From Zancudomyces culisetae HAW-14-8 (taxonomy: Eukaryota > Fungi > Kickxellomycota), in assembly GCA_052426225.1 (NCBI GenBank), contig JBNJNM010000006.1:124001-188000 (forward strand): a stretch of 64,000 bases of DNA. Direction: 5' to 3'. Positions 1-50,809 of the stretch are shown piece by piece. The position numbers and the translations under genes were made by a program. Positions within the stretch are counted from its first letter, which is position 1. Each line of letters starts with the position of its first letter. The notes under the pieces were generated by a model. The model was not told the origin of the DNA, made no database searches, and worked only from the letters and a program-made list of their open reading frames with translations.

Positions 1-3000
1 TTTCTGAACCTTGATGGGTACCAAAGGATGCTTCTTAGTTCTTCCGTCTTTATACAGCTGACAGGTATGGCAGCTTTGAACTATCTCGTATACATCTTTG
101 TAAAGTTCTGTTCCGCAATATCTGGCACTGACCCGCTTCCAGGTATTCTCTATACCTTCATGAGACTCTTCGTGAATTTTATTGATTATTTCCTTATAAT
201 TTCGCTCGTGAAGCACCTCTTTCAGAATCTTTTTAACTCTCTTAAATAGCTTTCCTTCTATTAATCTGTACTGCCTGGATTTATTCCTCAAGCGTTTTCG
301 AAAATTCTCGTCACTATTCCTAGGATAGGATAGGTCCGCCAAGTACTGTCTTACCGCCTCATGTTCTAGGTATCCCATTGCACACACGTCCAATTCTTCC
401 GGTTTGTCCTCTGTGCTTTCCGTAACCAATCTTGACAGTCCGTCAGCAGGATTAAATTTTCCCGGTAAGTGTTCTATTTCAAAATCATAGTTCCTTAGCA
501 CCATCGCCCATCTGGCGATTCTCCCGGAGATATCAGGCCCATGGAATATCTGTATCAGGGACTTGTGATCTGTACGAATACGGAATTTCCTGCCCCAAAC
601 GTAATACTTGTACTTCTTCACCGCCCATACTACAGCCAGCGCTTCTAGATGGCTTATACTGTAATTCTTCTCTGCCTTATTGGTTGTCCTACTTGCAAAC
701 TCGATCACTCTTTCCGAACCTTTTTCACCTTGCGAAAGTACGGCTCCAATCCCTAGCATAGATGCATCCGTAGTGATGACAAATTCCTGTTCCCAATCCG
801 GATGGCCCAGTACTGGTGCAGTCGTTAGTAATGTCTTTAGCTGTGTTACTGCCCCGGCTTGCTCTTCGGTCCACCTCCACTTTTCGTCTTTCTTGAGTAA
901 CCTGGTTAGTGGGTTTGCTATCCGTGCATAGTTTGGAATGTACTTTCTATAGTACCCCGTCAATCCTAGGAGAGATTGTACTTCCTTTATATTTGTTGGT
1001 TCTTTGACTGTCTGTATCGCTGATATTTTCTTCGGACTCGTGCCAATACCTTTATCTGAGACCACGTGCCCCAAGTAATCTATTTCTTTTTGACCTATGG
1101 CACATTTGTTACGGTGTAGCTGGATCTTGTTCTTCCTCAACAAGTTAAATACCAGTTCCAGATCCTTTGCGTGTTCGTCCACTTCTTTTGAAAACACTAT
1201 GATGTCGTCTATAAAGACGACGGCCTTTTTCCACAACACCGGTTTTAATATCTGCTCCATAGTCCTTTGGAACGTTGCTGGACTATTCGTTAGCCCAAAG
1301 GGCATAACGTTGTATCTAAAGCTACCACTCCCTGGAAGGGCAAAACTCGTCTTGTCCTTATCTGTTTCCCGCATTTTGATTTGCCAGAATCCACTTAGCG
1401 CGTCTAGGGAGCTAAAAATCACTGCCCCTGACAACGCCATAAATAGATCCTGGATAACGGGTAAAGGATACGAATCCTTTTTTGTAACTTTGTTGAGCTG
1501 TCGGTAATCTGCGCAAACTCGCAACTTACCATCCTTCTTGTGAACGATTACGACAGGCGAGCACCATTCGGCGTTGCTTGGTTCAATGATTCCTTTCTCT
1601 AACATTTCCTTTAACTGCTCTTCTACTTTCTCTTGTAACCTAAAGGGAATCCGATATGGCCGCTGACGAATGGGTTTGTCTACTTCTAGCTCAATCCTAT
1701 GTTCGGCTACGTCGGTCTGCTTCAAATCTGAAATATCCTCGACAAAAATGTCATCATATTCAGCTAGTACCTTCCTAGTATTCTCGTCTATGTAATCTTC
1801 CTTGCACTCGGGTCCTTCTTTCAAAATTAAATAGATTTCTGATTCTATTTCCTGAACTTCGTTGGATGTTACCAGTCTTGAAATTACTTCCGCATTCTCA
1901 ATGGGGAACCTTATTTCCGGTACGCGCAGGTTTATGGAAGCCCGGTGTTGTACCAACCAATCAGTACCTAGGATCAACGTACCTTCGTTTTTTGACATAA
2001 CTACTAGGTTTGCTGGAAAGACAAATGAGGCTATCTTAACTGGAACTCTATTTACTTTTCCTAGCGTAGGGTGTCGTTTCCCATCAGCAGTTACTATTAT
2101 TTGCTTCGAGGAACTTTCCACACCAACTCCCCATTCATCAATCATATTAATAGAAACCACGGAACATGCTGCTCCTGTGTCTATTACGGCCATGATCTCT
2201 TGCCCGAACACTTCCACCAAGGCTCTGCAGTTTGTAGTCTTCTTTTCTTGTAGTTGGATTTCATTTATTTCAGCTGCTTCGGCCCTATCGCAAATCTTAA
2301 CTAGTTCCTTTGACAATGATGGTGAGGTATTCAAGAGTTGAATTAAGTTGATTTTCGGATACACCTTTTCGAGTTCTTCCTTGAGTGAAAACTTCTTGTT
2401 TCCATCTACTACCTTATTGTAGTATCTTTTAGTTAACTGTGCTCTAAGCGGTATGTCCTCTCTAACTTCCTCAATCTCTTTCTCTACCTCAGTTGCTTCT
2501 GCACTTGTCATATTTCTCTCTTGGGTTACGGTTCTATTAGCTCGCTTACTAGGTCTTTGATCTGAGCTTTTGTCATTTTGAGCATAACCCCTCTTTTCTA
2601 CTGCAAATATCTCTTGATCTTTGACGTCATCCATCTTGACTAAATCTATATAGTTCACGTTGGTACCTGCCTCTTCCTTTGATCCCTTGTTCTGTTGTGC
2701 TTTCCACTTTTGGCACTCAAATCTTCTGTGACCTTCTTCCTGGCAAAAGTAACAGGTATAGCTTCTTGTATTTGCGGTGTTATAGCTTTTCAGCTTCTTG
2801 TCAATAGCTTCGTCGACCCTGGATAACAGGTTGACGCTCATCTCTTCAAATTTTTTAATCATCGCTGCGTATGGTGCCTGATCCTTAGCCATTTCCTTTA
2901 TAGTTTTTCCTTGCTTACTAGCTGCGTTACGAGTTGCTTCCTTGATCTTTACACCTACGCCTTCCATTTTCATTTTTGCATCTTTTCTGGTTCGTTGAAA

Positions 3001-3456
3001 CTTCTGTACGTGTGCAACCACTGCATCCCAACTGGTATACTCAATACTTTCAACACTTTCTTTGCAATCCGGATTCAGTGTACTTATGAGTAGGTTTATC
3101 CTCATGTCATTGTCTATGATCCCTGCCTTGGTGCATAGCTGTTCTACCTCATACTCTAGTTCCTCAATGCTGCTAAAGTCTGCTTGTCTGATATCTTTAA
3201 GCCTGTCCCAGATCCTTGTCTTGGATTCCTTGATAGTAAACTTGTTCTTCATTGCCTTGCTAAACGCTTTCCAGTCAGTAAAGGTACCTTTACTCTTCTT
3301 GTACCACAAGACTTCTTTCTTTCCCAAGTATAACCTTGCCAAGTCAACCCAATCATCCTCGCTCCAGCCATTCTGTTTAGCTACGAGTCTAAAGTTATCT
3401 GTCCATTCTTCCGGATCATGACCTTGATCTGCCTCAAACACTGTTGGAGTTATCAT
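1..3456 (-). CDS. G1 single-ORF Gag-Pol polyprotein, partial (open to the window edge)
   Basis: ATG at 3456 (MITPTVFEADQGHDPEEW), CCHC knuckle CYFCQEEGHRRFEC, protease IDTGAACS, RT VFIDDII, RNase H TDAS, start of the integrase zinc-binding region near position 100. The ORF track lists no minus-strand fragments here, as expected for an unbroken frame with no stop inside the window. Confidence 0.9.
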   Translation of the reverse strand, partial: MITPTVFEADQGHDPEEWTDNFRLVAKQNGWSEDDWVDLARLYLGKKEVLWYKKSKGTFTDWKAFSKAMKNKFTIKESKTRIWDRLKDIRQADFSSIEELEYEVEQLCTKAGIIDNDMRINLLISTLNPDCKESVESIEYTSWDAVVAHVQKFQRTRKDAKMKMEGVGVKIKEATRNAASKQGKTIKEMAKDQAPYAAMIKKFEEMSVNLLSRVDEAIDKKLKSYNTANTRSYTCYFCQEEGHRRFECQKWKAQQNKGSKEEAGTNVNYIDLVKMDDVKDQEIFAVEKRGYAQNDKSSDQRPSKRANRTVTQERNMTSAEATEVEKEIEEVREDIPLRAQLTKRYYNKVVDGNKKFSLKEELEKVYPKINLIQLLNTSPSLSKELVKICDRAEAAEINEIQLQEKKTTNCRALVEVFGQEIMAVIDTGAACSVVSINMIDEWGVGVESSSKQIIVTADGKRHPTLGKVNRVPVKIASFVFPANLVVMSKNEGTLILGTDWLVQHRASINLRVPEIRFPIENAEVISRLVTSNEVQEIESEIYLILKEGPECKEDYIDENTRKVLAEYDDIFVEDISDLKQTDVAEHRIELEVDKPIRQRPYRIPFRLQEKVEEQLKEMLEKGIIEPSNAEWCSPVVIVHKKDGKLRVCADYRQLNKVTKKDSYPLPVIQDLFMALSGAVIFSSLDALSGFWQIKMRETDKDKTSFALPGSGSFRYNVMPFGLTNSPATFQRTMEQILKPVLWKKAVVFIDDIIVFSKEVDEHAKDLELVFNLLRKNKIQLHRNKCAIGQKEIDYLGHVVSDKGIGTSPKKISAIQTVKEPTNIKEVQSLLGLTGYYRKYIPNYARIANPLTRLLKKDEKWRWTEEQAGAVTQLKTLLTTAPVLGHPDWEQEFVITTDASMLGIGAVLSQGEKGSERVIEFASRTTNKAEKNYSISHLEALAVVWAVKKYKYYVWGRKFRIRTDHKSLIQIFHGPDISGRIARWAMVLRNYDFEIEHLPGKFNPADGLSRLVTESTEDKPEELDVCAMGYLEHEAVRQYLADLSYPRNSDENFRKRLRNKSRQYRLIEGKLFKRVKKILKEVLHERNYKEIINKIHEESHEGIENTWKRVSARYCGTELYKDVYEIVQSCHTCQLYKDGRTKKHPLVPIKVQK

Positions 3457-3480
3457 CTTGTTATCAATACTAGGTTTTTA

Positions 3481-3499
3481 GGCCTAGCTGGGAGCGCCA
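3481..3499 (-). promoter_or_regulatory. tRNA primer-binding site of G1
   Basis: Starts TGG (complement of tRNA CCA) next to the 5' LTR; identical 19 nt at 8761-8779. Confidence 0.9.
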
Positions 3500-4254
3500 C
3501 TGTTATATTTTATTTCTAAAATATATGTATTTACTATAATTGTTCTATAATATTTCTTTAAGTTACTGTTATTAACTATAACAAGGTAATTATATTTTTA
3601 ACTGATTATTTTTCTGTATATCTTTCTTTATTTTGTCAAATATTTCCCTTTTTTATACTTTTTTTCTTTCTAAGTAAAAATTAATTTAAACTAAGATACT
3701 GAAACTAAACTTCTTTAATACTAAAACAATAAATTACTATTAAAAATTATATGACTAAACAAACGTTTGTATTGCGACACTATGAGTCATCAGAAAAAAC
3801 TAGATGACGTTATTTTCATCGATAGTGAAAAAAACTGATCCTCATTAGTTATCGCAAACTAATAATTTGTTCGTTTGCATGATGACTAATTAATTAGTCA
3901 TCATGCTCTCCTGCCCACTATATGACATTTTTTGTTATAGAATTTTACAATTCTATGATTATTTAATATTCTTATTGTATTATATGTTTATTACTAAGTA
4001 TATTATTTTTGTATTATTGTTCTTTTTAATACTATATATGTTTAACTTAATATTTTGTTAAGATGTGTTTTTATTTAATTCAAAGTGGGCGGTTGCTTTA
4101 ACCCCCAGATAATAATATAATTAATGAGGAAATATAATGTAAATAACTAACTAAACTATTGGACAAAAACCACAGGGGGAAAAAAGGTCCAATCTCAAAA
4201 CTATTAACTAAAAACCTAATGAATAAATAAAGCTAATTATATAAAATCGTATCT

Positions 4255-7200
4255 TCATACGACAGAACCCCGGTCCCAGATTGGGCCTACCGGTTTAGGT
4301 GTACGGAAGCGTACCAACTTGGTTCTTAATGGTGTACTAATCTCTGGTATCATGTATCTACTTTGATGATAATGCTTTAGCATATCACCGTTTACTAGAT
4401 CGCGGTTCCCTTCACTATCTGATATGACGTAAGTTCCTTTGTTCAACCTTCGGTCTACCTTGTATGGTCCTTCCCATACTTGTTCTAGCTTTGGCATGGG
4501 TTGTTCGGTCAGTTTAAGTACTATATCACCCTCCTTAAATGCTGAGGGTCTCACTCTGCTGTCGTATCTGATTTTTTCTTTTTCTTTTTCAGCGATACTG
4601 TTACTTAGTCCTACATTTCTAAGTTCAGGTATATCGGTTTTTATTGCATCAATCCTTTCTTGTATAGCTATATCGAGATCGCTAATTTCGGGTGGTGGTG
4701 CCCATAGGGCTGGCGTTGTTAATTTTACGCCGTATAATAATTCCGCAGGACTATATTTCGTAGCTCGGTTTCGCATCGTTCGAATGGCAAGCAGAGTTTT
4801 CCAAAGGTACTTGTCCCAATTACCTTTGTTCTTATGACACTGCTTCACTAACGTATTCTTCAGAGTCTGATTAAGCCGTTCCACCTGCCCATTACTCTGG
4901 GGCCTATAGGAAGTGGTGGGTGTGTGCTTAATCTGGAGGAAGTCGTAAACCTTGGCTGCTTGTTCACTGATGAAACCTGATCCTCTGTCCGTTATTATTT
5001 GATCCGGTACGCCATAGTGTTGCACTATTTGTGTAATAATAAAGTTAACTATTGTTTTAGTCTTTATGTTTTCAACAGCCTCAGCCACGGGCCACTTTGT
5101 AAAATAATCGATTCCAGTGAGTATAAAGCGATTTCCTGTTGACGATATTGGGTTTATTGGCCCCACTGCGTCTAATCCAAATATACTAAATGGCTTATAT
5201 GAATATATAGGATGAAGTCTGTTTCTTTTTATACGTCCTCCTTTAAATAGCTGACAATCATGGCATTGCTCTACAACTTTTCTTACTGTTTCGAAAAGCC
5301 CTTCGCCTGTATAAGTGTCTTTCATTCGTTCCCATGTATTCTCTACCCCATTATGATTTTCGTTATGTATTCGCTCTACTGTATCGCGCATGGTGCCTTC
5401 GTGAAGTACTTCTTTAATATTTCCTTTTATATATCGAACTAGTTTATCGTCTCTAACCCTGTATTTTGTTGCCCTGTTTCTTATTTTTAACTGTTGGCTT
5501 TCGCTACTATTTTCTGGATACCTAGAGTTAGTGATATAGTTTTTTATAGCATTATATTCAATAGATGATAGTGTAAAAATTTGAATCTCATTAGGTGATT
5601 CTTCAGCGTCCTTTGATACCAAACGTGAAAGCGCGTCGGCAGGATTCGTTTTTCCTGGACAATGTTCAATAGTGTAGTCGTAGTTTCTCAGCATCATAGC
5701 CCATCGGGCTACTCTGCCTGTAATCTCTTTGGAATTGAATAACTGCAATAACGACTTATGGTCAGTGCGTATCGTGAAGTGTTTTCCCCAGAGATAATAC
5801 TTTAGCTTTTGGATAGACCAGATTACCGCTAGACCCTCCAGATGTGAAATTGAGTAATTACGTTCGTGCTTATTAGTGATTCTACTTATAAAACATACCG
5901 GTCTCTCTCCATCATCAAATTTTTGCGAAAGTATACCCCCGATTCCAATCACGGAAGCGTCAGTTGTTACAATGAACTCACGCTCCCAATCTGGATGAGC
6001 TAACGTTGGTGCTTTTGACATCTTTTCTTTTATTGCTTCCATTGCCTGCTCACATGTTTTATCCCAATTCCACGGCTGTCCTTTTTTCAGTAGCTTTAAC
6101 AGCGGTGCGATAGTCGTAGCATAATTTTCCACGTATTTCCTATAAAAGCCTATCAAACCTAAAAATGATTGAAGCTCTTTAACTGATGTAGGTGCTCTTG
6201 CTTTCTTAATGGATTCAACTTTTTTCATGCTTGTTCTCACGCCGTTCGTAGTTATCACATGGCCGAGGTATTCCAATTCTTTCATTCCTAAGAAACATTT
6301 TGCTTCATGCAACTGTACCTTTCCTCCTCGTAGTAAATTAAATACCTCCTTTAGATGCACTAAATGCTCCTCTACCGTTTTCGAGTAAACAATTATGTCA
6401 TCGACAAATACTATCGCTGTCTTCCACAGAACAGGTGCAAGAATCTTCTCCATTAGCCGCTGAAAAGAGGCAGGACTGTTCGTTAAGCCGAACGGCATAA
6501 CATTGTAACAAAAACTGCCAGTACCGGGTATAGAAAATGCTGTTTTATCTCGATCCTCTTTGGCCATACGGATTTGCCAAAATCCGCTTAAGGCATCAAG
6601 AGATGAGTATATCTTTGCTCCCGCGACAGCCATAAAAATATCCTCAATAGTTGGCAGTGGGTAGGTGTCTTTCTTAGTCTGTTCGTTAAGTTTTCTGTAG
6701 TCCGTACATATCCTAAGTTTACCATTCTTTTTCCAAACGGTGACCACTGGGGAACACCATTCGGACATGCACTTGGATATTACACCGTTATTCTCCATTA
6801 TCTGTAATTCGTCTCTTACTTTTGTGTATAGGTGATGCGGGATCCTATAGGGTTTTAACTTTATAGGGGTATCGTCTTTTAGTATTATTCTGTGTTCCGC
6901 TTGATCTGTCTGTGTTAGCTGTTCCAAATCAAATGCGAAGATATCCCTATTATCTGCCTTCATAGCTTCGATTCGTGGGTCACTATACTTTAAGCTATCA
7001 TCAACAGGTGATTGGTTTTCTTTAAGCATTAAAAACAATTCACTTTCCTCACATTCCTCGTAGCCTGGCACATCCTGTGTGTGCAGTGGTACTATAAGCA
7101 TTATCCGTTCCAGCGGTAGTCTAAGCTCTGAATCTTTAATATTCAGTTGTGCCTGGTGCCTCATAAGCCAATCCATCCCTAAAATTAGGCTATCATCTTT

Positions 7201-8697
7201 ACGTTGCATTATAGTTAAATTTGTTGTAAACCTATTGTTTCCTATTCTTAGCGGAATATCCCTCACAGTGCCTAATGAATGATGCCTCATTCCGTCTGCA
7301 GTTATGATTACCTGGTCGTTTTCCTCATCCATGATTAGTCCCCATCCTTCTACCATTCTTGGTGTAGCAACGGAGCACGCAGCTCCTGTATCAACAACTG
7401 CCCATATTTCCTTGTTGTAAACTGTCACAATTATTCTGCAGTTGGTAGTGCGCGGTCTGGCAAACTTCAGCTCGTTGATTTCCTGCTTTTTTGTCTTCTT
7501 GCATAAACTTATCATTTCGCTGTTCAACGATGGTGCAACACTCATAAGTTGCGGGAAGGATATTGTTGGATTCCATTTAGCAAGTTGATCCACTAATGAG
7601 AATGGTTCTATCCCTTCTGCCATTTTTATCTCGGTTTTTACTTTAGTTTTTGAAGCTTGCGCTACATTATCCTGTTCTATCTCCTGCTTAAGCTTTTCTT
7701 GTTTTAAGTTGTTTTTTGATCTATAACTAACCTTGTTTCTAGCTGGGTCTGGATCTTCTACTTGCATTGACAGTTCTGCATTTGGTACATACTTGTTGTT
7801 AACAACTGTATCTGCACTATCCTGAATTTTCACTGCCTCTTTTCTTGTGTATGGCGTACTCTGTTTGTTCCCTGGTGCCCTTCGTTGTACAGCTAAGATT
7901 TCCATTGGTGAAATATCCTCATGAGCTAGTTCTAAAAAATTAACATTCTTAGTGTACTTTGACTCTGATTTATTCTCAGCTTCTTTCAGCTTGGGGCATT
8001 CGTACTTTTTATGTCCCTCCTTGCGACAGTGAAAGCATGTAACAACCCTAGGGTATGTACGTTGGTACCTATTTCTTCTAGATTCAAAAAACTTCTTCTC
8101 AACCGCCTCGTCTACTTTGCTTAGTAAATTTAAACTCAACTGTTCCATTCTTTCTAGTATCTCCTTATATTCTCCTGAACCACTGTTTACTTTTCTACTC
8201 AGACTAGCTTGTTTCCCTTCTTTTTCTACATCCTTTTCCCTGTCTGCTATCCATTTAACAACTGCATCCCATGTTTGTAAATTATTATCCCTAACTTTGA
8301 TCTTGATATCACTGCTCAATGAACTCACGAGCCAGTTATATTTTGCATTAGTATCCTCAATCCCGGCCTTGCTTAAAGCACTCTCCAAAGCAAATTCTAG
8401 TTCTTCTATAGACTCATAGTTTTCTTGTTTAATTTCCTTGAGTTTGTCGTAACTTACATAGCCTTGCTCTGCAGATGCAAATTTAGATTTAAATTCCACT
8501 GTGAAAGTAACCCAGTCACTAAACGTTGCGACATTCTTTTTATACCAAACTAGTTCACGCTTGCCTAACTTTAACTGCGCTAAATCAACCCAATCTGCTG
8601 CGTCCCACTTATTCAACTTGGCAATCAATCTAAACTGCTTTAACCACTCTTCTGGGTCAGTGCCCATGGATGATTCAAAACGAGGGATACTTTCCAT
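4255..8697 (-). CDS. G2 Gag-Pol polyprotein (Gag-CCHC-PR-RT-RNaseH-IN), 1480 aa
   Basis: CFHCRKEGHKKYEC, VVDTGAACS, YNVMPFGL...FVDD, TDAS, integrase LDAVGP/ITDRGS/QVERLN and WEGPY; no chromodomain. Confidence 0.97.
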   Translation of the reverse strand: MESIPRFESSMGTDPEEWLKQFRLIAKLNKWDAADWVDLAQLKLGKRELVWYKKNVATFSDWVTFTVEFKSKFASAEQGYVSYDKLKEIKQENYESIEELEFALESALSKAGIEDTNAKYNWLVSSLSSDIKIKVRDNNLQTWDAVVKWIADREKDVEKEGKQASLSRKVNSGSGEYKEILERMEQLSLNLLSKVDEAVEKKFFESRRNRYQRTYPRVVTCFHCRKEGHKKYECPKLKEAENKSESKYTKNVNFLELAHEDISPMEILAVQRRAPGNKQSTPYTRKEAVKIQDSADTVVNNKYVPNAELSMQVEDPDPARNKVSYRSKNNLKQEKLKQEIEQDNVAQASKTKVKTEIKMAEGIEPFSLVDQLAKWNPTISFPQLMSVAPSLNSEMISLCKKTKKQEINELKFARPRTTNCRIIVTVYNKEIWAVVDTGAACSVATPRMVEGWGLIMDEENDQVIITADGMRHHSLGTVRDIPLRIGNNRFTTNLTIMQRKDDSLILGMDWLMRHQAQLNIKDSELRLPLERIMLIVPLHTQDVPGYEECEESELFLMLKENQSPVDDSLKYSDPRIEAMKADNRDIFAFDLEQLTQTDQAEHRIILKDDTPIKLKPYRIPHHLYTKVRDELQIMENNGVISKCMSEWCSPVVTVWKKNGKLRICTDYRKLNEQTKKDTYPLPTIEDIFMAVAGAKIYSSLDALSGFWQIRMAKEDRDKTAFSIPGTGSFCYNVMPFGLTNSPASFQRLMEKILAPVLWKTAIVFVDDIIVYSKTVEEHLVHLKEVFNLLRGGKVQLHEAKCFLGMKELEYLGHVITTNGVRTSMKKVESIKKARAPTSVKELQSFLGLIGFYRKYVENYATTIAPLLKLLKKGQPWNWDKTCEQAMEAIKEKMSKAPTLAHPDWEREFIVTTDASVIGIGGILSQKFDDGERPVCFISRITNKHERNYSISHLEGLAVIWSIQKLKYYLWGKHFTIRTDHKSLLQLFNSKEITGRVARWAMMLRNYDYTIEHCPGKTNPADALSRLVSKDAEESPNEIQIFTLSSIEYNAIKNYITNSRYPENSSESQQLKIRNRATKYRVRDDKLVRYIKGNIKEVLHEGTMRDTVERIHNENHNGVENTWERMKDTYTGEGLFETVRKVVEQCHDCQLFKGGRIKRNRLHPIYSYKPFSIFGLDAVGPINPISSTGNRFILTGIDYFTKWPVAEAVENIKTKTIVNFIITQIVQHYGVPDQIITDRGSGFISEQAAKVYDFLQIKHTPTTSYRPQSNGQVERLNQTLKNTLVKQCHKNKGNWDKYLWKTLLAIRTMRNRATKYSPAELLYGVKLTTPALWAPPPEISDLDIAIQERIDAIKTDIPELRNVGLSNSIAEKEKEKIRYDSRVRPSAFKEGDIVLKLTEQPMPKLEQVWEGPYKVDRRLNKGTYVISDSEGNRDLVNGDMLKHYHQSRYMIPEISTPLRTKLVRFRTPKPVGPIWDRGSVV

Positions 8698-8760
8698 TTT
8701 AGCTGTAAGTCCTTAACCTATCTTGAAAAAGTTACTTTTATTACCATAGGCATATGTTCT

Positions 8761-8779
8761 GGCCTAGCTGGGAGCGCCA
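8761..8779 (-). promoter_or_regulatory. tRNA primer-binding site of G2
   Basis: TGGCGCTCCCAGCTAGGCC adjacent to the 5' LTR, identical to the G1 PBS. Confidence 0.9.
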
Positions 8780-9115
8780 CTGTTATAGAATTTCACAATT
8801 CTATGATTATTTAATATTCTTATTGTATTATATGTTTATTACTAAGTATATTATTTTTGTATTATTGTTCTTTTTAATACTATATATGTTTAACTTAATA
8901 TTTTGTTAAGATGTGTTTTTATTTAATTCAAAGTGGGCGGTTGCTTTAACCCCCAGATAATAATATAATTAATGAGGAAATATAATGTAAATAACTAACT
9001 AAACTATTGGACAAAAACCACAGGGGGAAAAAAGGTCCAATCTCAAAACTATTAACTAAAAACCTAATGAATAAATAAAGCTAATTATATAAAATCGTAT
9101 CTTCATACGACATTT

Positions 9116-9370
9116 TGTTGTGTGTTGCCATGTTTAACGTCCCATTTAGTGTTTTTTACACCAAATAACACACGGGACGGGTCATTTTACTTACCTTTTA
9201 CTATATGCTGCGAATTATTATACAGTAATTTACGATTTTGCAAAAGAGGACATTTATTTAGTTAAACAAAAATTTCAATTTTATACAATAAAATCTACAA
9301 AAAATCTAACTAAAAATTACAAAACACAATTAACCAATGGAAATGTTTCACCTATTGTAGGCATACAACA
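9116..9370. mobile_element. Solo LTR S1 (255 bp)
   Basis: TGTTGT...ACAACA inverted termini; shares CATGTTTAA, GGACGGG and TTAACCAAT blocks with 10055-10277. Confidence 0.8.
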
Positions 9371-9374
9371 TTTT

Positions 9375-9745
9375 TGTCGTGAATTTAAATCATCGCAATT
9401 TATATTTTTTCCCAATGGGTTTTTAATAAATTGCAAAGATGGTTAAATTAAATTCACGTAACATCCTTGTAAATCTGAGAATCACACTGTCATAGATGAG
9501 TCATGGGAATCATCTATAAATGATTTACAACATCTTTTCCCATTCAACAAGGGGAAACCCCCTGTTTCAATAATATTATTATAATTCATATTTCACATGT
9601 TTAAAACAGTTATAACTTTATAATTAAATTTATTATAGTAGTAGTTCGTTAGACCCAAAAAATTATATAAGGGCAAATAATTTCTATCTAGTTTTCGATA
9701 TGACTTAAGCAAATAAAAATATAAAAATATAATATTCACACGACA
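9375..9745. mobile_element. Solo LTR S2 (371 bp)
   Basis: Perfect 7-bp inverted termini TGTCGTG...CACGACA, with TTTT on both sides. Confidence 0.82.
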
Positions 9746-9749
9746 TTTT

Positions 9750-10049
9750 TGTTGTAGAATCTATAAAACTGTAATGTTTGTTTATTTTCTTATTTGTTTA
9801 ATACTATTATAACTTATTATTATATTATGTAATTAAAAGATTATTTTATTCCTTTTTTGTTGAGGGCATTCTCCTATACCCTGAATTATCTTCGATAATA
9901 AAACTAAATGTTATTCTACTTAATGACTAAAAATATTGATTGACAAAAACCACAAGGGGAAAAAGGTACAATCTCAGCTAACTATACGAATATTAATAAA
10001 ACTCAATAATTTAAATTAAAAATAACTATCGTCGTATTCTCATACGACA
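9750..10049 (-). mobile_element. Solo LTR S3 (300 bp), related to the G2 LTR
   Basis: TGTTGTAGAAT...CATACGACA; shares GACAAAAACCACA.GGGGA..AAAGGT.CAATCTC and the terminal CATACGACA with G2. Confidence 0.88.
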
Positions 10050-10054
10050 TTTTT

Positions 10055-10277
10055 TGGTGTATAATTACATGTTTAAGCTCCTACTGAGTAATATAATTAC
10101 CCAGTATTATACAGGACGGGACTTTTATTATTATATATTAGGTCTATAATTATTGTGGGAGAAAAAGACAATTTATTAATTAATTCAAAACTAGACTATT
10201 TAATGCATAAAATAATACTAATTAAATTAACCAATAAAATACAAGGAAATACAGGTATATAATTCCACTATATAACA
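10055..10277. mobile_element. Solo LTR S4 (223 bp), related to S1
   Basis: TGGTGTATA...TATATAACA; collinear motifs with S1. Confidence 0.75.
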
Positions 10278-10282
10278 ATTTT

Positions 10283-10697
10283 TGTAATATTTTATTTTAT
10301 TATTAAATATTTTTACCCGTTATGGGTGATTAGTGTCACTACACTCTACCTCACTCGATGCTGAATAGGTATTAAGCTACTCAGTCTAAGAATGTGGTAA
10401 CTTTAAATGTAGACACTTATGAAACTTATAATTTTTATCTGACTATAATTTTTCATTCATAAAACTATATCTATCAACTATATAAAAACTAACTATCTAA
10501 AATACTATTATCTCCTCTACCATTAAATATCCCGAACTGATATCAACTATTAGAAATTGGATAAAACCCTCCACAGGGAGAAAGGTCCAATCTCCACAAA
10601 TAATATAATAATAAAACTAATTATAAATAGATAAATGTAAATAATGTGCTATCCAATCATAGGCCGGTGGGTGTTCACTATCATTTTTGATATGACA
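10283..10697 (-). mobile_element. Solo LTR S5 (415 bp)
   Basis: TGTAATAT...ATATGACA; ATTTT on both flanks (10278-10282, 10698-10702); carries the CCACAGGGAGAAAGGTCCAATCTC motif shared with G2 and S3. Confidence 0.82.
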
Positions 10698-10701
10698 ATT
10701 T

Positions 10702-11524
10702 TGTTATATTTTATTTATAAATATATGTATTTACTATAATTGTTCTATAATATTTTTTCAAGATATTGTTATTAACTATAATAAGGTTATTATATCTTTA
10801 ACTGAATATTTTCTGTATGTTTTTCTTTATTTTGTCAAATATTTCCCTTTTTTATACTTTTTTTCTTTCTAAGTAAAAATTAATTTAAACTAAGATACTG
10901 AAACTAAACTTCTTTAATACTAAAACAATAAGTTACTATTAAAAATTATATGACTAAACAAACGTTTGTATTGCGACACTATTGTCACGACTTGACACTA
11001 AGTACTATTTGTATTAACTATGGCTATGATTTATTTAATAAAATACTATGAGATGAAAAGTATTTTATTGCTAAAGTTTCCTAAAGCAATAAAATCCTTG
11101 TCCTTATATAGTTTTACAATATACAAAATTAATTGTAAAACTCAATAAAAACTTTCTTAAACTATAACTTAAACCTAATATTATTAACTATCAACTCCAC
11201 AGTTAACATTTAATAATATGGGGTAAAACCAAATTATTATAAATTATTAATTCTTACTCCATAATTACTAATTTATGGAGTAAGAATTAAAGCGGAGAAA
11301 ACGTTAATAAATTTAACATTTGCTATTTTTAATAACATATTAAAAATAACAATATTGTCATGAATGGATCATGACAACTATGAGTCATCAGAAAAAACTA
11401 GACGACGTTAATTTCATCGATAGTGAAAAAAACTGATTCTCATTAGTTATCGCAAACTAATAATTTGTTTGTTTTCATGATGACTAATTAATTTGTCATC
11501 ACTCTCTCCTGCCCATATATGACA
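10702..11524 (-). mobile_element. Solo LTR S6 of the G1 family, interrupted by a nested solo LTR
   Basis: Closely similar to 3501-3927 once 10983-11381 is removed. Confidence 0.93.
10983..11376. mobile_element. Nested solo LTR (394 bp) with 5-bp TSD ACTAT
   Basis: TGTCACGA...TCATGACA termini. ACTAT is duplicated at 10978-10982 and 11377-11381. The empty site is visible in the G1 LTR (GCGACACTATGAGTCATC). Confidence 0.92.
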
Positions 11525-11526
11525 TT

Positions 11527-11687
11527 TGTTGTATAATTAAATAATACTTTTAATTATTTATATTTTTCTTATTTATATATGTATAATATGTATCGTATAA
11601 TTATTTTATAAATTAAAAACTTAGTTGAAACTATTATAAACTTAATGTAAACATCTGGAGTTGATCATAACTATATATTTACTACTA
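11527..11687 (-). mobile_element. Partial LTR S7 of the G3 family, cut by Tc1
   Basis: Closely similar to the first ~160 bp of the LTR at 53543-54005. Confidence 0.88.
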
Positions 11688-13254
11688 CAGTGAGTTTCAA
11701 AAATGTCTCAAAATATTGAAAATAATTTGCAAAGTGTAATATCTCGCTCAATAATATCCAGAAACTATATGTTTTTTATATAATATAATGCACAAATGTT
11801 ATATTCAGATTATATATAAACTGTATTTTTATTGGTTAAAAATTCATTATGAAATTATAAATTGAAAAATTTTTATAAATGAGACAATTTTGGGAATTTT
11901 TCAAAAAAAAAATTTTAACTATCATAACTTTATGAATTCAAATTTTAAATTTTTAAAACTTTTCATATTATAATATATATAATTGTTATACTAATAAAAA
12001 TAATAATTATTTAAATAATGATATCTGAACAACGTAAACTGGATATTAAAAACGCGATACTTGAAGGCAGAAGCATTGACCAAATCATTATAGAAAATGG
12101 AGTTAGTAAAGCAACAATATACAGAATTAAAGCAGCAATGAATATCTATTTACCGGCTAATAAACGCGGTCGTCCAGCGAAGCTTTCACCCCAAAGCAAG
12201 CGAATATGTACTAGGATGATATTATCTGGAATGTATCGAACTGCTACTTCGATACAAAAGAAGTTAGAAATGGATAATATTGTTAGTGCTTGTAAGTCTA
12301 CAATATATAGGGCTTTTTATGATTTAAAAGCCGTTGCAAAAAAGAAGGCATCCAAACCGAAACTGAGCCTTAAAAATATTGCAAAAAGGTTGAGAGTCGG
12401 AAAATCTCATCGCCACTGGACTACTGATGATTGGAGACAAGTAATTTGGTCCGACGAAACTAAAATCAACCGATTTGGATCTGATGGAAATGAATGGACT
12501 TGGGTTCGTGATGGTGTGAGTCTACAGCCGCACAATATTAACCAGACCGTAAAACACGGTGGTGGATCATTAATGATTTGGGGATGAATCACAGCATTTG
12601 GAACTGGCTACATGTGCCGAATAGAAGAAATGTTGAACAAGGAAGGTTATTTAAACATTTTAAAAGACGAGCTTAGCAATACAATAAAGTACTACAAGTT
12701 GGATTCCAAGTCAATAATATTTCAACATGACAATGATCCAAAACATACCGCAAAGTTAGTTACATGCTGGCTTGAAAACCAGGAATATAATACATTGGAC
12801 TGGCCGCCACAATCTCCAGACTTAAACTCAATCGAAACTATATGGGCAATCATCAAAAGACGCCTAAATAGATACAGTAAACCTCCGTCCGGGATGATCG
12901 AATTATGGGAGCGAATAGAAACGGAATGAAAATTTATTTTCAGTGGAAACAATACTTGGTCTTATAGATAGTATGCTCAAAAGAGTTGAGGCAGTTATCA
13001 AGTCTAAAGGAAGGTGGACAGAATTTTAAAGTTTTTTTTTGAAAAATTCCCAAAATTGTCTCATTTTTAAAATTTTTTCAGTTTATAATTTTATAATGAA
13101 TTTTTAACCAATAATAATACTAATTATATAAAATTAAATTATTGCAATTGTGCATTATATTATATAAAATTATCTAATTTCTGGATATTATTGAGCGAGA
13201 TATTACACTTTGCAATTCATTATCAATATTTTGAGACATTTTTGAAACTCACTG
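11688..13254 (+). mobile_element. Tc1/mariner DNA transposon with ~230-bp imperfect TIRs and TA flanks
   Basis: TA|CAGTGAGTTTCAAAAATGTCTC...GAGACATTTTTGAAACTCACTG|TA; TIRs at about 11688-11915 and 13028-13254. Confidence 0.96.
12018..13029 (+). pseudogene. Tc1 DD34E transposase, inactivated
   Basis: GRP motif, WSDETK, HGGGSLMIWG, QHDNDPKH...SPDLNSIE (34 aa between D and E). TGA stops at 12585 and 12927 and a frameshift near the C-terminus. Confidence 0.93.
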
Positions 13255-13299
13255 TATATACTACTATTAATAACTAAATAAATTATAATAAAATAATCC

Positions 13300-14600
13300 T
13301 AGTTGTCAGGTCCTGTCAGTTATCCAGTAGTTGCAATACATTTACTTTAAGTGATATCTTTTCAAGTTCTTCAATTAGTGAGGATGGTTTTCCAGAATTA
13401 TTCTTAGCTTTTTCCAGGGTTACAGTTGGTAACACTGATGATTGGTCCAAGCTCATATCCGATGAACGGTTGCTTTGTATCTGTACTGGTTCTTGCAGTC
13501 TTGGTTTTCCTACCCGTTTTGGTAGTTCCAGGTCTTGATCAGTTGAAACTTTGCGTTTGTCCACAGCGAATTTTCTTTCTGGTCTTCCAATGTATCATCC
13601 AATATCTGAATAAAGTTTACATTATTTTCAGCTTCTTTATTGTTGGTTTTTTCATTTGCTTTATTATTCAAAAGAGGACAGTGGCTCCTAGCATGGCCCT
13701 CTTTGTGACAATTGTAACAAATGAGTTTCCTAGGTCCTGAGTAACGTTAATTACTCTTCTCTACTCCTTTGATGCGCTTATCTACTACTTCCTCTACCTT
13801 GTTTAGTAGATTTACACTAAGCTCATCAAACATCTTAATAAGTTGTCCTAAAGGTTTTTGGTCCTTCACCAAATCCTTAACATTTTTTCCGCCATGACTT
13901 GCTGGGTTACGGTTGAAATACTTTTTCTTCTGTTCACTCTCCTTATTTTCAGACCTTCTCTGTAATACCATTTTTTTAGATTCCTCTTCCATAATCCTTG
14001 TTATTATATCACTCCAATCGTCATGCTCATCATCTTCAACCAATTTCTTATACTCTGGCTTAAGTGTACTTATTATCCAGTCCGTTTTTATAAATCCTTC
14101 TTTAATCCCGGCACTTGTAAGTAGACTTCCAGCTCCAACTCCAATTCCTCAATAGTATCAAAATCGTTTTGGCGTATAGACCGAAGTCTATCCCATATTT
14201 GTGACTTGGTCTTTTCACATGAAAATTTCTTTTTAAACAATTTGGCAAAAGTATCCCAAACAGTAAACGATGACTTATTCTTTTTGTACCAGATCTTTTC
14301 AGTAGTTTCTAGATACAGTTTTACGAAGTCAACCCGATCCTCCTGGTTCCAATTATTCAGTTTTGCCATTAATCGGAATTCCTAGATCCATTCCTCAGGA
14401 TCCATTATTTTACTTTAAAGAAATACCTTTGGCACATCATTCTGGAAATATATTTACTATACGTTTGAAATTTGATATATTATACTTATTAATAACAATC
14501 CTGTCACTGCCGCTGCTGTTAAATTTTAAATTCTTTATCCTGAATCAGGCTATTTACAATACTAGACTTTTATCTTTTATTTTATACTATTATAATTTTT
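13300..14600 (-). mobile_element. Degenerate Gypsy gag relic with decayed PBS and probable LTR edge at 14517
   Basis: Frameshifted gag pieces (AKLNNW...WYKKNK; FDELSVNLLNKVEEVVDK) homologous to G1/G2 Gag. AATCCTGTCACTGCCG looks like a tRNA 3' end and sits beside TGTTAAA. Right boundary not defined. Confidence 0.8.
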
Positions 14601-15470
14601 ATATTATTAATTATTAATTTTTTATATTTTTAATAAATCTCAATAATGGGAATATATTTTAAAAAAACTATAATGTAATATTTAATATGTAAACAAAAAA
14701 TATCATCAATCATGATTTAGATGGAGCTTGACTATGAAACATAAACATATTTTACAATTCAAACTACAATGTACCAAAAATACAAAACGCTTTTATTTTA
14801 AATATGTCATTACTTATAAATTTTATTTATTCAAGTAGTATTTTTGTCTTTATTATTAATATATATATTTCAAACAAATAGGTTAAATAATTGTCTCTAG
14901 TCCTTTCAGAAATACTTATCTGACTAGTGTCAACAATTAATATATTTTATAATAGTACTTAATAATTCTCAATAGTCAAATATATTAAACAAGTTCAATA
15001 CAGAGTATGACAATATTTGGATATTTCAATCTTTATTGTTTACTTAATATTATATTTCAAAAAATTATTAAATCTTTTATATATCATATGTTAAATTGTA
15101 CTTATAGTACATTTGTTATTTAAATTTCTCTAGTCATTATATTCTATAGAAAAGTTTTGATTATAAATTTTAACTATAAAAAATATTTTTAAATATTTGA
15201 TAGGTGTAGTAGAAATACAATTCAACATTAGCATCTTTTATTAGCCAACTAGAAAAACTTAAATATCTATAATGGCGTAAGTAACAATATAATAATAGTG
15301 TCAATATTAGAACCATATCAAAGCCTGGAACAGCAATAGATAAATTTTTATACCAAATTTTGCAATTGTTTCATCTGCAAACTTTTTATTAATTATGATT
15401 TATTGAAGTTCATGGATTATAGGATGGATATTTTTGTAGGGGAAACCCAGAGTTTCACGTAGTAATTCTC

Positions 15471-15630
15471 TTTTACTCTTTTACCCTTTTACCCTTTTAC
15501 TCTTTTACCCTTTTACCCTTTTACTCTTTTACCCTTTTACCCTTTTACTCTTTTACCCTTTTACTCTTTTTCCCTTTTACCCTTTTACTCTTTTACTCTT
15601 TTACCCTTTTACCCTTTTACCCTTTTACTC
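15471..15630. repeat. Minisatellite (TTTTACYC) x20
   Basis: 8-bp units TTTTACCC and TTTTACTC mixed, with one TTTTTCCC variant. Confidence 0.95.
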
Positions 15631-16529
15631 TATTATTCATGATATTACTCATTTCATTTTATTGTTATATTAAAAGTATTCTTAAACGTACAGATTTAGG
15701 ATCATAATATAACTCGGCATTTATTAATGGTATTTTTATACATAGAGTTAAATTTTAAGCTTAGATAAGCGATAAAAATGACAAAATATGGCTCCTCTAA
15801 GAAATATAAGTTAGCTTTGTAGTAAAAAATATGCACTATTACTAAATGGATAGTTACAATGATATAGTTTTTCTATTCTGAGTTCGAAAAACTACTCAAA
15901 TAATTAACTAGGTTTAGATATTAAAGACACCTTGTTCACCTTGTTTCATACGGATATCCGTCTTCTCTTATAATTTTCAACTAGGCTACTGAATGATGAA
16001 AATATATATAATAACATAGTAGTTAAGTTAAATTGAGTATGTTCTTTCAGGTTATTGTTCTTGTCAAAAAACTTCATTTCACAATTTAGGCCCTCTGTGC
16101 TAACAATGATTGATTTTGGTGTTTTATTGATGTTCTTTTATATTCGTTGATTATCACTCAACTGGCTTTCCGATCATATCTAATTATGTTGCAATTTACC
16201 ATTCGGTGTCACAAAATCCCATCACATCAACTGGAATATTTTGGTTAGCCCAATAAAACTATCACATTCTACCTCTACTAGTAAAATATATACTTAAATT
16301 TTTAAATCTTAAAATTTAAAGATAAATTATAGAAATGCTAAAGAATAGAGGGTAAGTATCCGGTAAAAAACAGTATAGGATATTTAGAATAATATCATGT
16401 TTTTGCGTTTGAATGAGAATCTTGCAAAGTAAAAGCGCGAAATGGGTATTGCTAATTGAGATTGGCAATGGGTACCAATTAGGACACGAGTAACAGTGAG
16501 TAAAGGTATCTTTAAAATAGGAGGAAAAT

Positions 16530-34015: not shown

Positions 34016-37000
34016 ATGACTGTTACAGATCAAAACAGAGCTAGCACACTAGTTGAGAATATAATCAGTGAAAATGAAGTGTCTGAAAGGCTCCAAAGGC
34101 TGACTAAAATGCTTGAAGCACACAATGAGTTGGTATTGCCTACAGATTACCCAAGGCCAGTGCCCTTGAAAGTAGTGGAAGCATCAGAGGATTTTCTGCT
34201 ACCAGATAACATAAGTATGAGTGTAATACAGTTGATGCTGCTTCACCAACAAAAGATGGCGCAGGAAAATGGATCCAGAGGAGAGGGGCCTTCTAGAGAA
34301 GACACAGTAACACCATTCACAGTTTTGTTGGCTGCGTTTGCAGTACTTTTGCATCGATATACGGCTAGCGAGGATGTGGTTGTTGGGAGCTCCAGCGAAA
34401 GCTCAAATGCTTTGGTTTTGAGAGTGCAAGTTAGTCCAACGGACACATTCATGGAAGTGTTGGACAAGGTTCAAAAAATTGAAAAAGAATCAGTGAATAA
34501 CCAGGTTCCATTTGATCAGCTTGTGAACGCTATTGCGAGGCAGCTAGAGAACAGCGGGAGAGCGGGAAGATCAGAGGCACAGCTTACAGCACTGAATTCG
34601 CTGTCCAGAATTCGATTCTACAATGCAATAGATACAACAGACATGATGCTTGAACAAATGATTTCGCAATCAACGGACTTGACAGTGTTCATCAGCCAGG
34701 AGTCCACGACTTCTTTGAGGCAAATGTTTCCAAGAATAAAAGTAAAAGTAGTGTATAACCAAGTTTTGTTTACAAGAATCAGAATCCTGCACATTCTGGA
34801 ACATTTGAAAAACGTGATATCTGCTGGAATGGAGTCGGCAATGATAGGGGCTACTGGTGATCAGAAAAACCATTTAGTGGGTTCGATCAATCTTGTCACT
34901 CCGCTGGATAAGAAAGTCTTGCCAGACCCAAATGAAGATTTGCACTGGGGGGAATTTCCAGGAAGCATTACCAGTATTTTTGCAAAGAATGCAACCGCAC
35001 ATCCAACCAAAAGATTTATAAGCGAAAGGCTACTTGGAAGTGACGGCAGACCAAAAGAACAGGTTGAATATAGTTATGAAGCAATATTCAACGCGTCCAG
35101 AATTGTAAGCAGAAAATTGAGGCTAGATGGGATAGAGCGGGGTGACGTGGTGGTGATATATGCATACCGTGGTGTTGATTTAGTTGTAGCGATTATGGGA
35201 GTTTTGATGTCTGGAGCTACGTTTAGCGTGATTGATCCCGCGTACCCGCCAGCAAGACAAAATATTTATCTTTCGGTTGCACAGCCAAGAGGATTGATAA
35301 TTCTTGGAAAGGCAGGATCAATCTCTGATGAGGTATCTGAGTATATAACCAAAAACCTCAGTATAACTAGCAGGATAAACGGATTGGGGCTTGAAAGCAG
35401 TACTGGAAAGCTTGTTGCGGAGGAAGGATGTTTGGAGCAAGCTAGTTCGCTTGTAAAAGCAAGTATCGATCCAATGGAGGATGTGGTTGAGGTTGGACCA
35501 GACTCGGTTGGAACACTTTCATTCACAAGCGGAAGCACAGGTATTCCAAAGGGTGTGCAGGGTAGGCACTACTCGCTTACGCATTTCTATCCATGGATGC
35601 GAGAGAAGTACGGCCTCTCAGAAAACGAGCGGTTCACCATGCTTTCAGGAATAGCACATGATCCAATTCAGCGAGACATTTTTACTCCCATTTTTTTGGG
35701 AGCCGAGTTGCATATTCCAACAACAGAAGACATTGGAATTCCTGGTCAGTTGGCAGACTGGATGGCAAAGAGTGAGATCACTGTTACACATTTGACACCA
35801 GCTATGGGTCAATTACTGGCAGCAAACGCAAGTGCCGCTATTCCATCTCTCAGGAATGCGTTTTTTGTTGGCGATTTGCTGACAAAGAGAGATTGTAACC
35901 GCCTTCAAGCACTAGCGCCAAACTGTGCAATAGTCAATATGTATGGGACGACAGAGACTCAAAGAGCAGTTTCATACAGTTTGATTCAGCCGCGAGCTGT
36001 TAACCCTACGTCATTGGCTTCCGCAAAAGAAATTATTCCTGCAGGGAGTGGGATGGTAGATGTACAATTGTTAGTAGTCAATCTAAACAACAAGCAACAC
36101 CTTTGTGGAGTTGGGGAGATAGGGGAAATTTATGTAAGAAGCGGTGGTCTAGCTGAGGGATATCTGCGCCTTGAGAAGGATACGGCAGAGAAATTTGTTA
36201 ACAACTGGTTTTCAAACATGACTACAAATCCCTCTGGGATGGGCACGAATGAGCACAAGTACTATTTGGGACCACGGGACCGAATGTATAAAACCGGGGA
36301 TCTTGGAAGGTATCGTCCAGATGGGGAGGTTGAGTGTATTGGGCGTGTGGATGACCAGGTCAAGATCCGAGGATTCAGGATTGAGCTGGGCGAGATCAAC
36401 AACATCCTGTCGCAGTATTCAATGCTAAGAGCTAGTGTGGTTCTGGTAAGAAGGGATAAGAACGAAGAGCAACAATTGGTTGGATACATAGTGATAGAAG
36501 AGAAAGAAGGAGAGGAGGGAAGAGCCAACAGACAAAAGGTAATAAGTGATATCCGTGAGTATTTGAAGCTTAAGCTTCCAAGCTACAGTATTCCCAGCGT
36601 ATTTGTTCCTATGAAAAAGCTACCACTAACACCAAATGGGAAGATCGATAAGGCAGCACTTCCATTCCCAGATACACCAATGTTTAGAAAAGGTACTGCA
36701 AATGAGCCAACACACTCGGCTAGCGATGCTGATAGTGCTGGGGAGGCTGGTACTACTGAGGGGGGTGCTATAGGATCCTTTGCCAAGAATTTGGGAGACA
36801 CCGAGCTAGCATTGGCAAAGATATGGGCTTCGTTGTTAGAACTTCCAAGTAATGTAACAATAGATAAATATTCAAGCTTTTTTGACCTTGGTGGACATAG
36901 TATTAGTGCAACGCGAATGATATTCCGAGTGAGGAATGAGCTGGTTTCTGAAGCACCATTGGGAATGGTGTACCAACATCCTACATTAACTGCAATGGCA

Positions 37001-47600: not shown

Positions 47601-47802
47601 CTTGCTTACATTTTAAAACTGCATATTGCCAATTTTCGGATATAACTAATTAATGAGAATAAATTAAGGCACTCATTAAAACATCTATTGCTTATCCAAT
47701 ACCAAATACCAATCATTGCTTCATTTACTAAGAGTGTTCGTACACAAGTTTAGCAAGATTCAAGATAAAGTAATGAGAGAGCGTAGGGTCCACTAAAAAT
47801 GG

Positions 47803-47810
47803 TATATAAA
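47803..47810 (+). promoter_or_regulatory. TATA box of paralog B
   Basis: TATATAAA 105 bp upstream of the ATG; marks the left limit of A/B homology. Confidence 0.7.
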
Positions 47811-47907
47811 AGGTGCCGAAAAGACCCACTTTGTTTCAACAACTCGTCTTTACAAAAACCCACTCCTTATTTCCTTTATAGTACTCGTTAAGAAAAACTA
47901 ACTTATA

Positions 47908-50547: not shown

Positions 50548-50809
50548 CTACTAAATTGATACACCTGGTCCTAGCTACATGATTCTATCCAATTAATATA
50601 TCTAATTTTTTTGATAGCTATTGGTTTGTTTTTTTGATTGTAGTTGAGGTAAATAAATACATTTATTTCTGGGATATGAGGCTAATAGCAAGTTTATTGG
50701 AACAATCCATGAAGACTATATCTTTACATTTGATCACGGATACCAGGGTGAACTCAATAAGTTTAATTATCATTAGAGTATTCAGTAATGGGACTATTTT
50801 GTGATTTCC

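Follow-up and report, generated by a model that had tools for sequence, protein, structure and literature searches.

Zancudomyces culisetae is a gut symbiont of mosquito larvae (Harpellales, Kickxellomycotina). The window analysed here, 64,000 nucleotides of the HAW-14-8 assembly GCA_052426225.1 (contig JBNJNM010000006.1, here C6, positions 124,001 to 188,000 of the forward strand), opens within a stack of ten units, Ty3/gypsy-type retrotransposons with long terminal repeats (LTRs) as well as leftover LTRs, which lie end to end and lead up to a tRNA-Arg(TCG) gene. This gene, called by ARAGORN and scored at 68 bits with Rfam, is encoded on the minus strand at C6:117393-117466 (L033:3393-3466), 6.5 kb left of the window; inside the window no tRNA gene was found. 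The 10 kb to the left (L033, C6:114001-124000; other fetched loci are likewise cited by L numbers, and bare coordinates refer to the window) were inspected because the flanks of other copies of the LTR of G2, one of the stacked elements, looked like tRNA genes.

Counted from the tRNA gene, the first unit is G0, a full-length element with LTRs at L033:3475-3789 and L033:8333-8647, a primer-binding site (PBS) at L033:8313-8332 and an open reading frame (ORF) of 1478 amino acids. Its 3' LTR lies 8 nt from the 5' end of the tRNA gene (ATATTTTT on the plus strand, AAAAATAT on the tRNA strand). The second unit, the full-length Ty3/gypsy element G1, has its 3' LTR left of the window (L033:8651-9064) and occupies 1-3927 of the window on the minus strand with its body (1-3480), PBS (3481-3500) and 5' LTR (3501-3927). 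It is followed by G2 (3933-9112, minus strand), likewise a full-length Ty3/gypsy element, with its 3' LTR at 3933-4264, its PBS at 8761-8780 and its 5' LTR at 8781-9112. The remaining units are solo LTRs: S1 (9116-9370, minus strand, 254 nt), which belongs to a non-autonomous family of terminal-repeat retrotransposons in miniature (TRIMs); S2 (9375-9745, no strand assigned, 371 nt); S3 (9750-10049, minus strand, 300 nt); S4 (10055-10277, minus strand, 223 nt), whose family has the same PBS as S1; S5 (10283-10697, no strand assigned, 415 nt), from an old low-copy family; S6 (10702-11524, minus strand), a member of the G1 family with about 95% identity to the G1 LTR; and S7 (11527-11687, minus strand), of which the first 161 nt of its LTR family are present. 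Inserted within S6, at 10983-11376, is a 394-nt solo LTR that belongs to an unrelated family and is flanked by a 5-bp target-site duplication (TSD) ACTAT; the other copy of this intruding LTR, in L030, has the 5-bp TSD ATTAG.

All eight junctions in the window consist of a ...CA end, a T-rich spacer of 2-5 nt and a TG... start. The spacers are TTTTT between 3927 and 3933 (G1/G2), TTT between 9112 and 9116 (G2/S1), TTTT between 9370 and 9375 (S1/S2) and between 9745 and 9750 (S2/S3), TTTTT between 10049 and 10055 (S3/S4), ATTTT between 10277 and 10283 (S4/S5), ATTT between 10697 and 10702 (S5/S6) and TT between 11524 and 11527 (S6/S7). Near the tRNA gene the order is G0-TTT-G1-TTTTT-G2-TTT-S1, again with no other DNA in between. 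Read on the minus strand, the whole arrangement is S7-S6-S5-S4-S3-S2-S1-G2-G1-G0-AAAAATAT-tRNA, and all orientable units share the sense of the tRNA-Arg gene. S3 was oriented by an LTR core that it has in common with the G2 LTR, S7 by a copy in L032 with a PBS on the same side, and S1 and S4 by copies elsewhere that carry a PBS and a polypurine tract (PPT).

Much of this had been read from the window alone in a first-pass annotation. All eight junctions were correctly placed there, as was the distinction between the stack and the insertion at 10983, which is indeed an element of another kind. To the units given a common direction there (G1, G2, S3, S5, S6 and S7), S1 and S4 can be added, which point the same way. 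The start of the stack, put at 3501, has to be moved, as the G1 body fills 1-3500 and the G1 3' LTR, G0 and the tRNA gene lie further left, and S7, regarded as a whole LTR, turned out to be cut by a DNA transposon, a truncation that had gone unremarked.

The three full-length elements have the structure of Ty3/gypsy LTR retrotransposons, in that their LTRs have TG...CA ends, the 5' LTR is adjoined by a PBS complementary to a tRNA, and the 3' LTR by a purine-rich tract. Each contains a single uninterrupted ORF, of 1478 amino acids in G0, 1459-1466 in G1 and 1477-1480 in G2; the G2 ORF (4255-8697, 1480 amino acids) joins Gag, protease (PR), reverse transcriptase (RT), RNase H (RH) and integrase (IN) in one frame. 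Pfam domains in G2 follow the Ty3/gypsy order PR-RT-RNase H-IN with the integrase after RT (RVP_2 at residues 422-525, RVT_1 at 656-815, RT_RNaseH at 903-1006, Integrase_H2C2 at 1104-1152 and rve at 1184-1266), and G0 and G1 are collinear with it, with 47-56% identity among the three proteins. Fragmentary gene models of Zancudomyces culisetae are the closest relatives of the G2 polyprotein. Its best match among solved structures is Ty3 Gag-Pol in the TFIIIB-bound intasome 7q5b (E = 2e-95 over RT-RH-IN), and the alignment with the Ty3 polyprotein stops at Ty3 residue 1444, corresponding to residue 1443 of 1480 in G2. Pfam gave no match to a chromo domain in G2, in which just 37 residues follow the SH3-like C-terminal domain. 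The C-terminal tail of the integrase is conserved in G0, G1 and G2 and reads GD(M/I)LK.YH.S..MIP(E/D)..T.L..KL.RF.

At its distal end the recognisable stack is closed by a Tc1/mariner element (11688-13254, plus strand) flanked by TA. The family of S7 continues past 11687, as five other copies read ...TACTACTA followed by TAAAGCTTG, and S7 is cut at the TA at 11686/11687 by this element, which has perfect 24-nt terminal inverted repeats including the TA (11686-11709 and 13233-13256). Its ORF (12018-12587) encodes HTH_Tnp_Tc3_2 and other helix-turn-helix domains, with the catalytic part of the transposase broken by stops; further copies were found in L014, L027 and L035. The remainder of S7 was looked for to the right of the Tc1/mariner element and is not there. 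This side is occupied by a decayed gag fragment (13290-14400) with about 68% identity to other elements, and the mismatch of the DNA on the two sides suggests a rearrangement between copies.

The repeat families and their positions at other tRNA genes

Each unit of the stack is a genuine repeat that recurs in the 27-Mb assembly with the same TG...CA ends. The G2 LTR is present in 19 full-length copies (92-100% identity) and S1 in at least 40 (96-100%). For S2 at least 18 full-length copies and for S3 at least 14 copies were found, the latter with a 22-nt indel near the 5' end; in both families pairs of LTRs lie 4.9 kb apart, which for S2 indicates that the family includes full-length elements. 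S4 has at least 17 copies, those flanked by PBS and PPT being in L039 and L046, S5 has five further full-length copies (72-91% identity), and the LTRs of G1 (the S6 family) and G0 as well as S7 were also found again elsewhere. S1 has the structure of a TRIM: three loci have its 254-nt LTRs in pairs at a spacing of 734 nt, and the interior, non-coding and about 480 nt long, opens with a PPT-like tract and closes with a PBS (TGGTGATCCAGCCAGGACC). No tRNA matching this PBS, which serves the S1 and S4 TRIMs, was found among the fetched loci. The PBS of G0 is complementary to the last 18 nt, including CCA, of tRNA-Arg(TCG), the product of the very gene that adjoins G0, and the PBS of G1, G2 and the S7 family matches the 3' end of tRNA-Asn(GTT) at 18 of 19 positions.

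LTR families that are otherwise only 70-75% alike (G2, S3, S5 and others) have in common a core of about 33 nt (GACAAAAACCACAGGGGGAAAAAGGTCCAATCT), with 90-97% conservation. It is found in the window at 4158-4197, 9006-9045, 9939-9976 and about 10556-10595, and at numerous further loci, among them L024-L030 at about 1506-1538. Its ends TTGGAC and GTCCAA are inverted repeats that may form a hairpin, and the core could be a regulatory element or part of the R region.

Where do these families insert when they are not in this stack? A census of 60 other loci of about 3.3 kb each, around further copies of the G2 LTR and of S1 and with four families in all, showed nine independent LTR copies that adjoin tRNA genes at distances of 6, 7, 7, 7, 7, 7, 8, 8 and 8 nt. 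The genes concerned encode tRNAs for Thr, Gln, Glu, Ile, Phe, Lys, Asn and Arg, plus one without assigned anticodon. The remaining copies adjoin another LTR end (...CA or TG...) with 2-5 nt in between. For 25 LTR copies the locus contains a tRNA gene that is reliably called, and in all of them the side of the tRNA gene and the orientation relative to it are the same; two seeming exceptions hinge on a doubtful 128-nt intron-containing ARAGORN call in L046 that is absent in default mode. At L042, L047 and L053 a lone insertion lies beside a tRNA gene with ordinary DNA on its far side, so a pre-existing LTR is not needed. Anchors of another kind were also looked for: in 35 loci no Pol III (RNA polymerase III) gene other than tRNA genes reached Rfam gathering scores. 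A tenth case is a G2-family element 5 nt upstream of a tRNA-like unit at L003:1420-1500 (C13:324228-324308, minus strand), which has A and B boxes, yet is called neither by ARAGORN nor by Rfam. This unit may be a tRNA pseudogene or a Pol III unit resembling a short interspersed element that still attracts insertions.

The TSDs made by these families are 4 bp long, and their sequence changes from one tRNA gene to the next. A full-length G2-family element at a tRNA-Lys gene (L007/L009) is bracketed by TTGT, and solo LTRs are bracketed by GCTG, TGTG, GTGC, ATTG or TGTT; the duplication is exact in five of six solo LTRs that abut a tRNA gene and in about half of all solo LTRs. The spacers, too, vary by tRNA gene (GCTG, TGTG, GTGC, ATTG, TTGT, TTTT). 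Since the spacers are specific to the tRNA gene and lone insertions occur, the target is a position relative to a Pol III gene and neither a sequence word nor an LTR end, and the T-run of the present stack exists because the few bases upstream of tRNA-Arg, read as their complement, are re-duplicated at each insertion. The proposal of the first-pass annotation that several Ty3/gypsy families share near-nucleotide-precise, orientation-specific targeting is borne out, and so is its view that every insertion re-duplicates a short target and that the stack is neither a tandem duplication nor a concatemer. Of the TSD length of 4-5 bp given there, the lower value stands and the 5 bp does not apply to the stack families, and the single T-run named as the target has to give way to the tRNA-Arg gene as the determinant.

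Polarity, mechanism and alternatives

A further property of the stack, newly recognised here, is that the youngest units are next to the tRNA gene. The three units nearest to it are the full-length elements with intact ORFs of 1459-1480 amino acids, and the seven distal units are solo LTRs. The LTR pairs of the full-length elements are identical in G0 (315/315), differ at a single position in G2 (331/332) and by one mismatch plus indels in G1. Among the solo LTRs, S1-S4 are 98.6-99% and S5-S7 91-95% identical to their nearest relatives. In the genome-wide set, copies of S1 that abut a tRNA gene have no private substitutions (n = 6), as compared to a mean of 2.1 in the others (n = 27; one-sided Mann-Whitney p = 0.0011), and mean pairwise identity shows the same trend (p = 0.009). 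Moreover, wherever a stack contains S1 twice, divergence is greater in the distal copy (0 vs 17 and 2 vs 7 private substitutions). It follows that a new insertion goes in between the tRNA gene and the element that came before it. The intact ORFs and the identical or nearly identical LTRs of G0, G1 and G2 suggest that the tRNA-targeting system may still be active.

How could ten units come to lie end to end at one tRNA gene? We consider it highly probable that the locus was built by repeated, position-specific integration of Ty3/gypsy LTR elements upstream of one Pol III gene, tRNA-Arg(TCG), a reading that takes in the observed anatomy, anchor, insertion window, orientation, TSD length, independence of spacer sequence and polarity. 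Briefly, at least nine families integrate a few bases upstream of the tRNA's mature 5' end, so that the proximal LTR comes to lie 6-8 nt away, always with the direction of element transcription equal to that of the tRNA gene and with formation of a 4-bp TSD. Each newcomer would land between the tRNA gene and the previous element and displace the older copies outward, and a remnant of 2-5 nt of the re-duplicated target would remain between neighbouring LTRs. The variable length of this remnant could be explained by successive 4-bp staggered cuts that wander by 1-2 bases within the 6-8 nt available. Older elements would subsequently be reduced to solo LTRs through LTR-LTR recombination. By analogy with Ty3 and Tj1, the integrase would be tethered to the Pol III pre-initiation complex (TFIIIB/TFIIIC) at the tRNA gene.

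Several observations weigh against this reading or narrow it. The vestigial chromodomain through which Ty3 contacts Brf1 is absent from the G2 integrase, an exact 4-bp TSD is missing from about half of the internal solo LTRs, and the distal end of the stack is rearranged, with S7 truncated and a decayed gag fragment beyond the Tc1/mariner element. The census was confined to loci around G2-LTR and S1 hits, with the other copies of S2, S3 and S5 represented by their coordinates, and the order of the units in this stack is that of the assembled contig alone. Furthermore, the order of families varies among stacks, S1 being proximal to S4 in four and distal in three, and in the G0 family old copies occur as well as young ones. 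A global chronology from family order was tried and given up, since this split makes it uninformative. As family order is inconstant, the periods of activity of the families overlapped, and the record gives a succession of events for each single locus only.

Of the alternatives the one that fares best, albeit highly improbable in our view, is random or loose insertion followed by selection, such that only copies in a harmless position and orientation survive. The compactness of the genome (27 Mb) would favor such a filter, and the authors of the Tj1 study raised it as a formal possibility for fixed orientation (PMC4600332). However, a 3-nt window (6-8 nt) at nine tRNA genes together with spacers of 2-5 nt is far tighter than harmlessness predicts; insertions 20-500 nt upstream are expected to be equally harmless and none was seen in the census, and the pattern is already present in very young copies with identical LTRs and no private substitutions. 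Slightly less credible still is that an integrase bound to the termini of resident LTRs steers new copies there, in which case stacks would grow anywhere once seeded. About two thirds of the copies do adjoin an LTR end and not a tRNA gene. But this leaves the lone insertions at L042, L047 and L053 without an explanation, all stacks whose end was reached in the fetched DNA finish at a tRNA gene, which has one defined side and a single orientation, and the youngest copies are always tRNA-proximal, a pattern that growth at either end would not give. We reject LTR-end targeting on account of the lone insertions and the polarity of the stacks. An even smaller probability attaches to sequence-directed targeting, in which the integrases would recognise and reuse the T-run or the word ACA-T(n)-TG with no role for the neighbouring gene. 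It draws on the T-rich spacers throughout the stack and on the fact that each insertion recreates a T-run next to an LTR end. Nevertheless, the same families leave GCTG, TGTG, GTGC, ATTG or TTGT at other tRNA genes, T-runs are extremely common in this genome (non-coding DNA has 22-30% GC) and yet the copies are confined to tRNA genes or stacks, and the T-run here is simply made up of the 8 nt that precede tRNA-Arg; the tRNA-gene-specific spacers largely refute the T-run as target. Practically negligible, finally, is a chimeric join of repeats during assembly or segmental copying of another stack: the region is highly repetitive, its sequence is known here from the assembly only and S1 and S2 are also adjacent at C6:1.31 Mb (C6:1309914-1310541), but the same architecture occurs at at least 20 loci on at least 10 contigs with differing family orders and locus-specific spacers, the second S1-S2 pair is, to judge from its spacer GCTGT in place of TTTT, of independent origin, the junctions follow the logic of TSDs, and the assembly consists of 27 Mb in only 25 contigs.

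A wider and clearly more tentative reading, to which we give less than even weight, is that orientation-fixed, Tj1-like Pol III targeting is common to an entire radiation of LTR elements in a fungus from an early-diverging lineage and uses a module other than the Ty3 chromodomain. That radiation would comprise at least three intact autonomous families (47-56% protein identity) and several solo-LTR and TRIM families, and the conserved C-terminal tail of the integrase is a candidate for the targeting module. Were this so, fixed orientation would be intrinsic to the integration complex and not a by-product of selection, the trait would be ancestral in fungi or have evolved a third time, and each tRNA gene would be an ordered and datable archive of retrotransposons, since growth is strictly polar. 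Irrespective of the wider reading, clean polar stacks order the insertion events at a locus, and if the system is still active tRNA genes would be predictable sites of structural variation in Zancudomyces culisetae.

Further features of the window

Beyond the stack the window contains several unrelated features. Two 478-nt LTRs of 98.5% identity (57238-57715 and 63263-63740) enclose another Ty3/gypsy element of about 6.5 kb with an ORF at 60115-62376; this element lies outside any tRNA-anchored stack found here. At 15470-15640 about 21 units of an 8-mer CTTTTAC(C/T)C form an array of telomere-like appearance. An interstitial telomere was considered and rejected, as the pattern occurs nowhere else in the genome. 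The sequence at 14665-15003 shows 71-78% identity to a repeat found 2-19 kb from most contig ends in an end-specific orientation and, judging from this resemblance, is a subtelomere-type repeat that sits some 139 kb (about) into contig C6. Long ORFs at 40945-43209 and 47908-50547, neither of which has Pfam matches, carry internal tandem repeats whose period is about 21-30 nt (regions 41100-42460 and 47800-50800, and L032 at about 7200-10000). They are duplicated, with 94-97% identity between the window at 42-50 kb and the DNA that adjoins its right end. A host gene at 34016-38569 encodes an intact alpha-aminoadipate reductase (Lys2-type, A-T-R domains). Along its whole length this protein is 100% identical to that of Zancudomyces culisetae, which identifies the organism, and it is 56-57% identical to those of Smittium and Furculomyces.

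Comparison with known Pol III-directed elements

Targeting of tRNA genes by LTR retrotransposons is a textbook 'safe haven' strategy. The mechanism described here belongs to this known class, integration of the Tj1/Ty3 type that is directed to Pol III genes and fixed in orientation. What is new is the phylum of the host, and the polar stacks of many families are unusually clean. Insertion within a few nucleotides upstream of tRNA genes, with nine LTRs at 6-8 nt and the rest inside stacks, is shared with both prototypes. In Saccharomyces cerevisiae, Ty3 insertions fall within 1-4 nt of the point where Pol III initiates, about 12-15 bp upstream of the mature tRNA end, and take both orientations; they depend on contacts of the integrase with TBP and Brf1, and a vestigial chromodomain binds Brf1 (PMC5911963; PMC5006619; PMC8632968). 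The elements of Zancudomyces culisetae resemble Ty3 in their domain order and in nucleotide-precise integration next to the Pol III start site of tRNA genes. However, they differ from it in having one orientation, a 4-bp TSD and a single ORF, whereas Ty3 has both orientations and a 5-bp TSD, and its gag is separated from pol by a +1 frameshift; in place of the Brf1-binding chromodomain they have 37 residues past the SH3-like domain. A variant with a 4-bp TSD and no chromodomain of the Ty3 type may help to find the minimal determinant of targeting.

DGLT-A of Dictyostelium is, like G2, a single-ORF Ty3/gypsy element without chromodomain that inserts upstream of tRNA genes, but its window is 13-33 bp, either orientation is used, the host is an amoebozoan, and the trait is considered convergent with Ty3 (PMC5006619). 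Tyl3, Ylt1 and Tyl6 of Yarrowia lipolytica and the beta/Tca8 LTRs of Candida albicans are Ty3/gypsy elements found a few bp upstream of Pol III genes; in contrast to the present case all belong to Ascomycota, and the review that describes them reports no orientation-fixed stacks of several families (PMC5911963). Its table, from 2018, lists fungal tRNA-gene-targeting LTR elements from Ascomycota only (PMC5911963), and a full-text search of the literature for Zancudomyces or Harpellales together with retrotransposons or tRNA returned no such report.

The closest known behaviour is that of Tj1 from Schizosaccharomyces japonicus, a comparison of behaviour and not of phylogeny. Insertions of Tj1 lie 5-11 bp upstream of mature tRNA 5' ends and never depart from the tRNA gene's orientation, a feature that its authors called unique among wild-type LTR elements, and Tj1 generates a 5-bp TSD (PMC4600332). 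The windows are similar (5-11 bp for Tj1 and 6-8 nt here), orientation is fixed in both, and the host of Tj1 has about ten related families clustered with tRNA genes. Differences are the 5-bp TSD and the stop codon between gag and pol of Tj1, as opposed to 4 bp and a single uninterrupted ORF, and the host, Ascomycota as opposed to Zoopagomycota/Harpellales; moreover, in Zancudomyces culisetae non-autonomous TRIMs target the same sites and deep polar stacks are preserved. Fixed orientation, until now known only for Tj1 in a foreign host, is thereby confirmed in a native genome as natural and common to many families, TRIMs included.

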